Shown: positions 35,301 through 41,300 of the stretch, piece by piece | Layout: each line of letters begins with the position of its first letter | Position numbering within the stretch: position 1 is the first letter of the stretch | Assembly (NCBI GenBank): GCA_964035545.1 | Contig: OZ037768.1 | Span: 16,289,875 to 16,353,874, forward strand | Length of the DNA stretch: 64,000 nt | Source: Bugula neritina | Lineage: Eukaryota; Animalia; Bryozoa | Direction: 5' to 3' | Program-made: the position numbers and the translations under genes | The notes under the pieces: model-generated | What the model saw: the letters and a program-made list of their open reading frames with translations, nothing else | What the model was told of the DNA's origin: nothing | Database searches by the model: none

Positions 35301-38300
35301 ACCAAGCATAAATGTTACATTGACCCATCTACAGCACCTGAACAACAACACTGACAAGTAAACAAAACTTTGATGCAAGAGCATAATTTTGAAGCACTTT
35401 TTGTTGGGATCAAATCAAGTCCAAGTCTGAGATGTATGAAACGATTTATTAGTGAAATGTTTACACCAAAAAAAATCTGTCAATGTATTAGATATTATAT
35501 ATTAAATATTATATAACAAATATAAATTTATTAGGTTTATAAGTACACCACAACACCCACTCACACACAATGCAGCTGTGGTCTAGCAAAAATACAGCTA
35601 GCAAAGTAAATGATAGTTCATAAATTCAAATATCGGCCTGTTCACACAAACTTCACTATCAGGGGCCATCATAAGGAAGGAATAAAATCGATTTATTACA
35701 AAAATAATTATTGAAAACCAAATACTTTCTAGGCCAACAGAAATATTTTAAAATAGAAGAAGTTACCCCGAGAGCGTAGGTGATGGCTAAACCAGCGAGA
35801 CCAGCTGTCAAAGTAGAGTTCTCCACATTCCTGCTCACCACAGCCAGTATCACTGCAGAGAGGACTACAAGGGCTCCCACTGTCTCCAGTCTAATAGCCA
35901 GCCACCTGTAAGAAAGACACTATCTTAGCAACCTTCCCTAATGCCTGCAGCAATGGAGACAGCCTGTTGTGTTATAAGTAATTCATTGAGGCATCAGCAA
36001 AAATCATGAAGATCCAGCTTGGATTAGAAACTGAAAGTACAAAATCTTATAATGTAGCTCATATCAGGGGGGAAATATTAATTTCAAAACAAATTTTGCA
36101 AAAGTATGAGTGATTTAGTTCAATAAAAAATAAAAAGGTTGTGCATTTTCAGTCCCCTACATTTTTAAAGTTACAAAGAGTAAAGGTTTTGATAGGCAGA
36201 TATGAGAGCAGAGCACCTGTTGGCTATTATACTAGGATAGTAGGCTTGCTGGTGCTTGTCTATTCTATATAGAGACTCTTTCATAAACTCCTTTTCCTTC
36301 CTGTACGCTCTGATGGTGGAAGCTCCGTGCACACTCTCGTCAAAGTGACTATATATAGGTGACAGGTTCACTGATTCCAGTCTCTTCAACTGCCTTGACG
36401 TGCTCACATAAAACCTCTGCAACACAGAAATTCTACCATCTCAAAATCAAGTAACAAAAACACCAGCCACGGTTGTTTTATTCCTAGTGAAAGCTCAATG
36501 ACTAATGAGGAATTAAGTAGAACAATGTAGAATGTCAACAAGTAATTTTGATTTTCCTATTTCAAATTTAGTTGGAGTTATTTTCCTTCTTAACTATAAA
36601 TAAGGAATATGGTAATCTAATAAATATTTGATAAAGAAATGTGTATTATGCAATTATGTTGCAGAAATAATCATAAGTAGTACCATGAAATGCATGAAAA
36701 ATCAAATGTGCTAAAGTAATTTAACATGCTCAAAGTTTTTCAAGCAACTAGCATAACTTTTACTTGGGCGCTATAAAAAAACTCAGCACTAAAACCATGT
36801 TAATTTTACTATTTTAAACTATATCTTTATATTTACTTTATGGCTTTAATATTAAAAAAACAATCATCACAAAAACCCTCCTAAAAATTTATTTTTTCTA
36901 ATAAATAAATAAGTAAAATCATTTTAGTCAGAAATTTTTAGACTGAGTGATGGCAATCCACAAGCTCTAGATAGTATTTACCCTTTGGTAAATTATTAGG
37001 TTATACAACAATATGAATATTCCATTTCCAGTACTGATAATAATTAGTCAGTTTATTGTCACACTGATGATAGACAATTTAAAGCTTTCATTCCTAAAAA
37101 ATGAAGTGTGATTTTACTTTTACTGGTGAAAATAAATGAAGATTTTTCTAAATTTCACTGAAAGTAAATACAATGAAACTTTTATTGTTATTAGAATTAT
37201 ATAATTAAAAAACTGATTTTAAATTTTCGGCACCTTTAATGAATACTCAAGTTTTCGCTAGTTTAGTCAAACTTTTCAAAAATTCCCTGAAGATCTACCT
37301 TATTTTTAGGCAGGATTTACAAACTCACCAATTTTTTAAACCTTCACTTTGGGACAAAACCAAGGCAACTATTAAAGCAGCATGCCTCATGTATGCTATA
37401 AGAAATGAGGGGTGTGTGAGCAGATGTTGCTAAACATTTGGCAATTTAGCTTGAATCAAAAAGCACATGTATAAGCTAGATATGTAGTTGTGTACTCAGA
37501 AATACTTATAGAAGTGTTTGGAATTGGATACAAACTTGTAGCAAATCTAAGAGCGAAAAAGCTTGATAGTATGGCACCTAGGAGTTACCTTGGCAAGCCT
37601 AAAGTTATGTGAAATAGGGGGAGTTCCAGAAGTGTTGGCTTATTTTCATTTATCAGAATTGATATGGAAACGCAAATGCCCATATGATAATGAAGCAATG
37701 TTAAACCTGTTAAAGCTGGACCACTAGTAAAGGATATTAAAAACAGAAACAGCATTGTCCAAGGAAACAATATAAACTATAGTTTTTGTTGAAAAATTCA
37801 AAATACCTGCCAACCAAAATTTAATTGTAAAATTCTGCCCTTAATGAGCATTTGTAAAGCACAATTATAAAATTATTTCTCTATAATGAGACAGTTTTAT
37901 ACCTGAATGAGTATGTTTAGGACAATGAGAGGCAGTGCAACCAAAAGAAACCAAGCGCTACTCAAAGCGACAATAATTAGAGTACCCAGAACACTGAGGG
38001 CACACCAAATCATAGATCTTATGTTCATCGGTAGAATTGAATCAATGGTGTCAATGTCTTTTCCAAACCTGCAAAACCCATTTGTATACAAATCATAGTC
38101 CCAATAAAACATAGACATTGAAATGACATAAAACTTAAATATGACGGTATATAATATTCAAACACTAGAAGGTTTGCAACTCTCAACTTTGCTAAAAGAG
38201 TTGGTAACATAATAATTTCTTTGTAAACTTTGTGAGCCGCACCCTGTTGAAGAGTTACATAAAAGCCCAAAATGTACCAACGTGACACATCAAATGACTA

Positions 38301-41300
38301 GCACAGATAGCACACTTCAAATGTCTATTAGTTGTATGACTTGAAAATGTCCATCAAAATGGCTTTACTCTGACTTTGTAAGCCTGGGCCACTCAATTTC
38401 ATGAGCAGGATTCTATTGCATTTCAATAGTACTGCTATGGTGTGACTGACACTATTAGTGTGTGACTGACACTATTAGTGTGTGACTGACACTACTAGTG
38501 TGTGACTGACACTATAAATGTGTGACTGAAAAGTGTGTGACTGACACTATTAGTGTGTGACTGACACTATTAGTGTGTGACTGACACTACTAGTATGTGA
38601 CTGACACTATAAATGTGTGACTGACAAGTGTGTGACTGTTGGGCTCAAAAAAATTGACAGCTATTTTTATGTTGATACTTGCTAATAACTATAAGCCTTT
38701 ACTTTTTATGCATAATAAAATAATTTATTTTGTAATTAATTTTTCTTTTGTTTTTAAATTAAAAAAATGGTGCAACTCTGGACTTTTGGGTCCAATAACT
38801 TATTCCATAGAGTCAAAACATTGGCAGAGTGAGTTGTGTGAAAACACCGAGAGCATTAACTAAAACTGAACCATGTTTGTTTACATCACGAAACGACAAC
38901 ACTGACGGCTGACAGAATTAAAAGGCTGATTAATTTGGACTCTTATTTTCAACAAAAGATTGATCATAGTAACATCAAATTACCCATTAAAAGCAATGAT
39001 TCCAATTGATAATCCATTTAAATTACGGAAACATTGAGACAGAAACTTATTAAACTGATATTGTCATGGAATCAGGGAGAATGACTTACCTGTTCAAGAT
39101 CCGACCAGTAGGCGTTGTGTCAAAGAAATTCATTGGACATCGTACAATATTGTGAAGGATACCAGTGTGAAGCCTACGAGATGCGAGCCAACTAGCAACA
39201 GCAAGGAAGAGCATCGCCACCAGCGCTAGTACGCCTTTTTAAAATACACGAACCCTAATGCAATAGATAGACTGATGCAAAATCAATATTCTGATTGATT
39301 GGTAAAGTGAGGGTTGGTATAATGCTTTACTCTGCCACAAGTTGCTGCATAGAAAGAAGGCAATTGAGCAATCATCAAATGATTTATTTGACAGCACAAT
39401 CGAAACCATCACCGACGGCAGCAGCAGCAGCTTTGGTGACCAACCTGTATAATGATGTAAAGTGCTGCCAACAAGGCAGCTGGCAGCAAACACCACGGAG
39501 TTGTGTACCCTACAATGGCTATGGTTAGGATGAGCAGAATGACGCAATTTATCAATGATCTGCATGTAAATGGCATCACCAAGTCGATATCCGCAATGTC
39601 ACTAGAGAATCGGTTGATTATTCTACCCAATGGTGTAGTCTCGAAAAACGACATAGGATTTCTAAGAATATTTTCAAGGAGGTGTTTATGCAACTCAAAT
39701 GAAGCTGCAACTCCAACCATAGCCATTGCAATGGACGCTACCGCAGTAAAGAACCCTGCAGAATATATAATAATCATTTGATTCAGTAGACAGAGCTAGC
39801 ACAGCAAATTTTATGAAAGATAAAAACATTAGAAAAAATGCTGCAGAGAATGCATCTTCAAAAAAATTAAGTTTTTCCTGGACACAATCTGAATAGCAAA
39901 ACAGATATTGAACTGTAAAACAATCTCTGATGTTAATTATTCGACAGTTGACGAAGACATCTTGTAACAAAATGATCACCTTGAGCAACACCAAAACCCG
40001 TGTATAGTCCCAAATACTTGTTTCTGGTGTCAGTGTTGTTGAAAGCACGAATATCATCACTCCACCTGCTCAACCATATGTTGGATGTCAAGCCACATGA
40101 TTGGTCCATCACAAAGAATATGATGGTGAGCAAAGCAGGTAGCCACCCCATTGCTGTGATGTAGCGCTTTACCACAGCAAAGCTAACCTATAAAATTGAC
40201 ACGTAATTAACATCCTCTACACTCACAGGTAGGTTGGGCAACTCTTCACAACGCCAACCTTTGAAAAAGTTCAATATTTAGAATTACAAACAGCATTGCA
40301 TACTTCCAGTAAAGGATTAAGCGACTCTGTTATCTTGTTCTTCAGAAGTCATAATTAAACAAATAGCAAGAGCTTTAGGGTTTGAAATACATGGCAAAGT
40401 TAAGATATTTTAAAACTTAACTTGTTATTGTCAACGATTTTTGTTGGATAAAAACACATTTACACTGTGCAGAATACAGTAAACAAAGCCAAGCTTTTAA
40501 ATGTATTATGTATCCCTCTTTTTCATAACATATTATTTATAAAATAAGTTAGGGAGATGCCAGTGTATCTGATGCTCACAATTATTACTATGTTCCCTAA
40601 CAAGCTATCAAGAGTTCACAGAGAAATGAATACTAACTCTGCCACGCTGAGCACCTTCCTCTTGAATAAGTTTCTCCGTAGGATTGTTACCTATTGGACT
40701 TTCCTTTTCATCTGCTGCTTCCTTCTCAATATCTTCAGCAACATTCAAAGAGGAAGAGCGTATGGCACTAAGTTCTCTGGCCTCCCCTGTCCCACCTACA
40801 CATACCAGTCAATATAACATAACATGTGACCTTTTCATAGAACACACCCAGGGTGACATAGTAAGACAATACTTCGTTACAGCATTTACAGCACTGGAAA
40901 ACACTCACCTATGACCTCTAGAGATACAGAAGGTTGTATGTTGTGAACAGACAACAGCGACCTGGCAGATCTCAAGCTATGAGTATCCACATCCTGTTTC
41001 GTCTTGGACCTGAGGCTACTTACACTAGTGAGTCTATCTCTGAAAAAGGAAACATTTTCCAGTGAAGGAAGTACAAGGAGTTAATTAGCTGGGGTCTGTT
41101 TAGGTTACCCAAGACTACCACATGACATTGCGTAATAGCCTGCAAGACGTAAAGTTACCGGTTTACACGCAACTAACCTGATCTAGATTCTCATTTGGAC
41201 CTAGTTAGTATGATCAGATACGCTTGCACAGCTGGTTTAACCCGTGTAATGAATAAAACCTTAAAACTAAATTTTGAAGCATTAACCAGAAATGTTTATG

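Follow-up and report, generated by a model that had tools for sequence, protein, structure and literature searches.

Organization of the locus

The stretch of Bugula neritina DNA analysed here (64 kb, hereafter the window) carries a long ABCC gene on its minus strand (Table 1). A tblastn search with full-length ABCCs recovered all the core exons (TMD1-NBD1-TMD2-NBD2) in order from 54532 to 32333, and one exon matched PF24357 (TMD0_ABC) at an E value of 3e-4, a single-exon match under the cut-off. Compared with solved ABCCs, the downstream constitutive exon scored 75 bits against MRP1, 66 against ABCC3 and 57 against ABCC2, and it is the best MRP1-like copy of that exon in the genome. Judged by its sequence, the host gene is an ABCC1/MRP1-type long ABCC transporter with a predicted export function. 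The Atlas search returned generic ABC_membrane clusters only, with no informative taxa.

Variant A, which corresponds to about residues 1028-1130 of human MRP1 (end of TM13, coupling loop, TM14 and TM15), and its homolog B lie in tandem as alternatives between the same flanking exons, with equal length and phase. The textbook form has one exon per alternative, whereas variant B consists of two, B1 and B2, in the window, in a close relative (L034) and in a distant lineage (L043). The five exons were found where the initial annotation had placed them on the minus strand; each is bounded by AG and GT and has an open frame. The annotation's count of equal totals also holds: both A (311 nt) and B1+B2 (145+166 nt) run from phase 1 to phase 0. 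Database searches were made exon by exon; B1 and B2 were joined for the frames, the dN/dS values, the trees and one tblastn against the introns of the window.

As had been proposed, an intact transporter is obtained only from A or from B1+B2: two of the eight exon combinations keep the downstream exon in frame, and the other six, co-inclusion and skipping among them, are non-productive, with an early stop. One detail had to be corrected. The combination A+B1 was said to fit overall; its 456 nt are 0 mod 3 where 2 is needed, giving a frameshift and a stop at nucleotide 7 of B1.

With many ABCC paralogs in this genome (43 matches), the locus could be an artefact of assembly in which two paralogous genes or haplotypes were fused or collapsed, a possibility that the initial annotation had named for paralogs. 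This is refuted by the single contigs on which both variants lie in independent samples, from the upstream exon to B2 in L034 and from the upstream to the downstream exon in L043, while one contig of an independent sample covers B1 and most of A. Besides, A and the downstream exon are single-copy in the assembly, their nearest paralogs being at most 55% identical. We give a chimera practically no weight.

Table 1. Features of the transporter gene and of the duplicated exon region (window positions)
Feature	Positions	Strand	Description
Host gene, long ABCC	~32333..58004	-	TMD0-like exons, TMD1, NBD1, TMD2, NBD2; approximate span
Upstream constitutive exon	39980..40187	-	208 nt; TM12 and start of TM13; phase 1 at end
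Variant A	39445..39755	-	single exon, 311 nt, PFTxRS type
A-B1 intron	39235..39444	-	210 nt
AATAAA in A-B1 intron	39388-39383	-	
TGATTGCT in A-B1 intron	39374-39367	-	
Acceptor look-alike in A-B1 intron	ends at 39345	-	
CAATCA element in A-B1 intron	39301-39291	-	
Variant B, first exon (B1)	39090..39234	-	145 nt, phase 1 to 2
B1-B2 intron	38069..39089	-	1021 nt; splits variant B
Variant B, second exon (B2)	37903..38068	-	166 nt, phase 2 to 0; TM14-TM15
Block after B2	37803..37842	-	conserved in L034; may pair with the element ahead of B1 (pairing not significant in window)
Downstream constitutive exon	36217..36416	-	200 nt, RFYV...

Conservation and divergence of the two variants

In the close relative (L031-L035), A, B1 and B2 are all present, without exon indels and with only conservative changes, and the splice sites are identical to those of the window, with one base less before the AG of B1. 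Both variants gave a dS of 0.11 and a dN of 0.03 (dN/dS about 0.3), indicating purifying selection (Fisher p 0.01-0.04 per variant, 0.0015 combined). Decay or absence of one variant in relatives, on which the initial annotation could have failed, was thus not seen. One of the two could still be a relic that is no longer translated, a reading favoured by their dN/dS being higher than that of the upstream constitutive exon (about 0.05 against L034). However, the changes are only conservative, stops and indels are missing from the exons while the adjoining introns have many gaps, and both variants were retained in lineages where synonymous sites are saturated, so that we regard a relic as very improbable.

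The two variants of the window share 44% identity in protein and 48% in DNA, with saturated synonymous sites. Together with their intact state in relatives and the dN/dS of about 0.3, this agrees with the suggestion of an old duplication kept by selection. The cytosolic motif had been described as kept and the helices as strongly different, and the regional identities reproduce this: the cytosolic loop is highest (18/27), and TM13 (10/30) and TM14 (8/27) are the lowest two.

Residues 7-102 of A align with human MRP1 1034-1129 over equal spans, with the known residues E1065, T1067, K1078, D1081, D1084 and K1092 in register. This alignment supports the proposed mapping of Glu1089 to F in A and M in B. 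In a structural study of MRP1, the E1089A change is cited as having little effect on vincristine export, and so this residue alone is weak support for a change in specificity. The TM14 pocket residues of MRP1 are, in bovine numbering, Q1088, M1092, S1096 and N1099; they correspond to F/S/C/L in A and to M/S/C/S in B, and the identity of two of these four positions between the variants counts against functional divergence. On balance, it is fairly likely that the two pumps would differ in substrate preference.

Distribution among animals and origin of the split variant

A more distant lineage (L043-L045) carries, on one contig, the upstream exon, A (311 nt), B1 (145 nt), a short intron, B2 (166 nt) and the downstream exon. 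The intron interrupts B at the same codon as in the window, and identity to the variants of the window is 61% for B and 45% for A. Judging from the tree and from the 56% identity of the upstream exon, this lineage is probably a bryozoan. A third lineage (L046) has A (311 nt) and B1 (145 nt), with the same donor as in the window. In six other animal loci (L036-L041) the 311-nt exon is unsplit and occurs in arrays, from 2 copies up to 8 or more, nearly all of exactly this length and with AG/GT ends; L039 is a complete array of two. Every array includes one A-type copy with the PFTxRS motif in TM14. In the tree, the bryozoan B copies group together (support 99/95), as do the A-type copies (96/90; SH-aLRT 92 after masking the PFTxRS motif). 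Because the A-type copies stay together in a single clade after this masking, the type may predate bryozoans as a phylum. We lean slightly towards the view that the A-type exon (PFTxRS, Phe at human 1089) is one orthologous splice variant that arose before bryozoans diverged from other phyla and is mostly first in the MRP1 arrays, the other copies turning over, and that bryozoans would also splice a two-exon module as one exclusive unit.

The B1-B2 intron cuts the Arg codon of N-R-F, with AG^GT (^ marks the junction) at both ends in the window and in L034; the acceptor in L043 reads AG^AT. Its length is 1021 nt in the window, 493 nt in L034 and 90 nt in L043, and in the window it contains a 20-nt tandem repeat (38440-38626). 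No intron similarity above shuffles was found between the window and L043. The initial annotation had left open whether one copy gained or lost an intron. Since the six other animal loci carry unsplit copies, B most likely gained the intron, rather than A having lost it. A copy of the intron from paralogs was rejected: in the ABCC5-like group and in four MRP-like genes the exon continues across N-R-F and is interrupted only further on, and as none of the examined paralogs has an intron at that site, it was not taken from them.

It is also conceivable, if somewhat doubtful, that no intron was inserted into a single exon and that B1 and B2 instead descend from different members of an array once three copies long, B1 being the 5' half of one and B2 the 3' half of the other, which meet at AG^GT in the Arg-Phe codons. 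Such an origin would fit the AG^GT on either side of the intron in the window and in L034, the AGGT that an unsplit exon of L036 has at the split site and the readiness with which the 311-nt exon duplicates. Against it, the L043 acceptor is AG^AT, AG^G is also the usual site of intron insertion, and no exon remnant was found in the B1-B2 intron, where the best of 28 queries reached E 0.012 and lay out of register; a tblastn for extra or decayed exon copies in the four introns gave nothing significant.

Splicing and candidate control elements

Taken together, the gene very probably contains a mutually exclusive splice switch, in which inferred transcripts of a bryozoan ABCC1/MRP1-type gene use either the single exon A or the pair B1+B2, the two sides stemming from a duplicated exon of which copy B gained an intron. 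The copies A and B would go back to an ancient tandem duplication of the 311-nt exon, and B would later have acquired its intron at an AG^G site in bryozoans. Each mRNA would encode a full pump with a differing TM13-TM15 segment lining part of the substrate pocket, and the six other combinations would be cleared by nonsense-mediated decay. The earlier statement that one gene makes two efflux pumps is supported by frames, selection and conserved layout, the transcripts being inferred. A single run, whose record does not list it as RNA, gave contigs (5,501 letters) in which no splice joints were found, and the homolog searches yielded no protein fragments with A or B spliced in; the latter means little because these searches see only proteins of 0.55-1.75x the query length.

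A could also, or mainly, act as a terminal exon, with a read-through stop after 11 codons and the AATAAA of the following intron giving a truncated protein. Both the read-through frame and the AATAAA are preserved in L034, but AATAAA is common in AT-rich introns, and A-type exons at all loci follow the pattern of internal exons, closing on the same Gln in phase 0 with a GT donor behind it. We find this use of A highly unlikely.

Regarding the choice between A and B1+B2, the A-B1 intron is conserved beyond synonymous sites, with 10/209 differences from the close relative, 2 of them in the first 113 nt, against a synonymous divergence of about 11% (p about 1e-3 to 2e-4). An 8-mer after A was found again in 3/4 lineages (10/3000 shuffles, post hoc), and the B1 acceptor closes with a run of purines (AAAAAG). 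When folded, the A-B1 intron gave z = -0.96 and no compensatory pairs. In a check for docker-selector control (competing RNA pairing), a duplex flanking B1-B2 was strong in L043 alone (-31 to -33 kcal/mol, beating 40/40 shuffles, although chosen after a scan of all intron pairs); it was weak in the window (-20.5, best shuffle -21.2) and weaker still in L034 (-14.8), and no compensatory changes were found in the three. Tentatively, the choice may be steered by the conserved elements of the A-B1 intron and the purine-rich B1 acceptor; pairing between the RNA immediately ahead of B1 and that immediately behind B2 might contribute by looping out the whole B module.

Alternatively, A and B could be included independently, with exclusivity arising only through nonsense-mediated decay of frameshifted products. 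All six other combinations have an early stop, the A-B1 intron (210-1207 nt across lineages) is too long for simple steric blocking, and a conserved competing pairing was not found in the window, L034 and L043. Such a mechanism would nevertheless be wasteful and does not scale to 8-copy arrays, and the unusual conservation of the A-B1 intron and the recurrence of the 8-mer argue against it; we consider it unlikely. Decay alone would alter the mechanism and leave both protein products unchanged.

Comparison with known MRP1 systems

Mutually exclusive exons have been published for the MRP1 of several invertebrates (fly, C. elegans, sea urchin); what appears new is the conserved choice between one exon and two, together with an A-type variant shared among lineages. 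In sea urchin ABCC1 the splicing is said to affect exon 22, which lies in the last membrane domain, with efflux reportedly differing between the forms. This exon is probably the same segment as here, and we know of no two-exon alternative for it. The abstract of the 2017 survey by Yue and coworkers reportedly does not have Bryozoa among its listed groups. The published sea urchin splicing also diversifies a single MRP1 gene, as proposed here (Gokirmak et al., 2016, PMID 27053522). The metazoan survey described arrays of tandem duplicated exons in the same family, with proposed mutually exclusive use (Yue et al., 2017, RNA Biol 14:1399, PMID 28277933, via PMC6071210). According to the description in the citing paper (PMC6071210), these arose by multiple independent duplications across phyla, whereas the A class appears common to distant animals.

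As the initial annotation stated, homologous mutually exclusive MRP1 exons are published for C. elegans mrp-1 (exons 13A-D, four copies of 156 nt; PMC4165533) and, as variable exons, for Drosophila MRP/CG6214 (Grailles, 2003, as cited in PMC2680897 and PMC4234516). Insect gene models of Blattella (P0007) and Molorchus (P0008) hold three tandem repeats of the same loop segment, of about 73 residues. In C. elegans and the insect models the exon sizes are different and each alternative is a single exon, unlike the two-exon B. The mutually exclusive exon sets of human CUX1 (PMC5740500) also have a multi-exon set as one side of the choice, but this gene is unrelated and was not described as opposing one exon to its own intron-split duplicate. 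We found no description of a one-versus-two-exon MRP1 form in the literature, and the survey of Yue et al. (2017) may cover this exon class or split variants.

The A, B1 and B2 exons would be missed or fused by gene predictors and by tools that look for exons of equal length. Being compact, the locus lends itself to a natural experiment on two questions: how splicing can select two exons together in place of one, and how an alternative exon comes to acquire an intron. A tie to the symbiont-made bryostatins of Bugula neritina is a guess only, and the switch predates that species. If the A-type is indeed ancient, it would qualify the view that MRP1 arrays arose independently in each phylum, and would represent a conserved second MRP1 specificity in many invertebrates. 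The sharing of the A-type suggests that marine invertebrates have conserved a second form of their main conjugate-export pump, which is relevant to how these animals handle toxicants.

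Structure and reading frame of the exon variants

The A and B exons are held by a long ABCC gene with a weak TMD0 match. Its downstream constitutive exon, single-copy in the 216-Mb assembly, has MRP1 as the nearest among solved structures. Database searches were run per exon, by reference, and B1 and B2 were joined in local scripts alone, among them a single tblastn against the introns of the window. All five exons were found where the initial annotation had placed them, with AG/GT ends and open frames. A, B1 and B2 can be joined to the flanking exons in eight ways. The frame survives only with A or with B1+B2, as had been proposed, and the remaining six combinations meet an early stop. 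The statement that A+B1 fits overall was wrong: at 456 nt this product is frame-shifted as well. The proteins of A and B are 44% identical, alike in the cytosolic loop (18/27 identical) and divergent in TM14 (8/27), as first described.

Features of the window
Feature	Position	Strand	Description
Host ABCC gene	about 58004-32333		
Upstream constitutive exon	40187-39980	-	
Variant A	39755-39445	-	one exon, 311 nt
Variant B, B1	39234-39090	-	145 nt, first of two exons
Variant B, B2	38068-37903	-	166 nt, second of two exons
Downstream constitutive exon	36416-36217	-	
Acceptor look-alike	39374-39331	-	in the intron between A and B1; TGAT resembling a branch site, stretch of pyrimidines, CAG that ends at 39345
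Tandem repeat	38440-38626		B1-B2 intron; 20-nt unit, 9.6 copies
Short open frames	28924-29367	+	two, similar, side by side
Pogo/Tigger-like transposase	25408-23799	-	two frames: HTH_psq + Tc5 HTH, then DDE_1
NIPSNAP-family gene (PF07978), exons	about 19292-18287	-	
ABCB1/P-glycoprotein-like gene	about 1800-15460	+	full-length, facing the ABCC gene
Simple-repeat stretch	near 11600-12200		in the ABCB1-like gene region

The two short open frames (KTSYAYNKNRIEYMAG and TTSYVYNKKRVQYMAG) had no Pfam match and are perhaps a further tandem exon pair. Locus L007 has two similar short TM14-15 segments in succession, which may be a second exon pair. Elsewhere in the genome assembly there are three close MRP-like paralogs (contigs C2 and C3) and a big clustered expansion of ABCC5-like genes with more than 30 matches (C1, C5, C6, C7). 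Several COX1 copies were also found (C321, C6:11174072, C17, C214, C73): one is on a mitochondrial contig, C6 has an almost complete nuclear copy, and others lie on contigs of other organisms, such as C17, which has no TGA codons.

Conservation of both variants

An assembly chimera of two paralogs is contradicted by an independent sample with B1 and most of A on one contig. Nor is either variant decayed: in a close relative (L034) the upstream exon, A, B1 and B2 share a single contig; their splice sites match those of the window, and none of these exons has an indel. Between this relative and the window, dS was 0.11 and dN 0.03, the same for A and B, and all replacements were conservative in both (Fisher p 0.01-0.04 per variant, 0.0015 combined). 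A far more distant lineage (L043-L045) has on one contig the upstream exon, A (311), B1 (145), a 90-nt intron, B2 (166) and the downstream exon, the intron splitting B at the same Arg codon as in the window; identity to the window's variants is 61% for B and 45% for A, with saturated dS. In a third lineage (L046) we found A together with B1, which is again 145 nt long and keeps its donor site; the contig stops short of B2. Both lineages are probably bryozoans. We have shown here that A and B are two interchangeable segments under selection; the arrangement is real and old, and probably functional.

Proposed splice control

Each mRNA would take either A or the B1-B2 module, and decay would clear all other splice products. 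The A-B1 intron is better conserved than synonymous sites (10 differences in 209, two of them in the first 113 nt), and an 8-mer downstream of A, a post hoc find, is shared by three of the four lineages (10/3000 shuffles). In L043 the sequence just before B1 pairs with that just after B2 (-31 to -33 kcal/mol), a duplex that would loop out the whole B1-B2 module. In other MRP1 clusters, pairings that compete with one another have been described (PMC6071210; PMC10790352). The matching pairing of the B1 and B2 flanks was no better than shuffles in the window and weaker still in L034, and therefore we propose only tentatively that such a duplex steers the choice.

The conserved acceptor look-alike is richer in pyrimidines than the five real acceptors and is followed 14 nt later by GTAAAG; a 14-nt microexon at this place would shift the frame. 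It is a possible decoy or poison exon, and was not consistent across the distant lineages. In the close relative nothing matches the part of the B1-B2 intron with the 20-nt repeat.

Known mutually exclusive exons

The initial annotation named mutually exclusive MRP exons in Drosophila and C. elegans, in agreement with the literature: C. elegans MRP1 has four such exons of 156 nt (PMC4165533), and others are described in MRP1 of Drosophila and other insects, of sea urchin (by its title, Gokirmak 2016) and across metazoan phyla (Yue 2017, as cited in PMC6071210). The A/B pair resembles a tandem cluster in every sequence test, except that variant B consists of two exons, and its transcripts would likewise be exclusive for A or B. 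In human CUX1 a multi-exon set is one side of a mutually exclusive choice (PMC5740500). As far as the citation or title of Yue 2017 and Gokirmak 2016 tells, the two-exon B is a new form of the known MRP1 exon switching.

Substrate pocket

The TM14 substrate contacts of bovine MRP1 are Q1088, M1092, S1096 and N1099 (PMC12647609); at the equivalent positions A has F/S/C/L and B has M/S/C/S. In that paper E1089A had little effect on vincristine export, and we therefore rate a difference in substrate range between the putative A and B pumps as no more than likely.

Exon arrays in other animals

Exon A as query retrieved many single-exon fragments with a common PFTxRS motif in TM14 (A-type copies). 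Six of these loci (L036-L041) have tandem arrays of this exon behind one upstream exon, with at least 3, 6, 8, 2, 2 and 2 copies in that order, nearly all exactly 311 nt with AG/GT ends (the exceptions being one of 314 nt and one cut by the locus end). Human ABCC1 exons 22-24 likewise measure 208, 311 and 200 nt, as do the upstream exon, A and the downstream exon of the window. L039, alone among the six, reaches the downstream exon, and its array consists of just two copies, an A-type one and an ordinary unsplit one. Upstream exon identity to the window is 28-38% in these loci versus 56% in L043 and L046, a low value which suggests hosts of other phyla. Within the L037 array lies an LTR-type retroelement (8158-11783) with RT, RNase H and integrase domains, and two L038 copies (13330 and 20210) are identical over the 64 residues compared, by recent duplication or assembly repeat.

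The initial annotation had left open an intron gain or loss in one copy. Because every outgroup copy is unsplit, gain in B is most likely. The tree covers about 100 columns, its bootstrap had not settled, and its sequences were picked for their likeness to A. In it the three split B copies group together (support 99/95), as do the A-type copies (96/90; SH-aLRT 92 with the motif masked). There is one A-type copy per array. It takes the first position in every bryozoan-like locus and in five of the six array loci, the sixth being L037, where it comes second. We consider this shared A-type variant the lead of greatest value.
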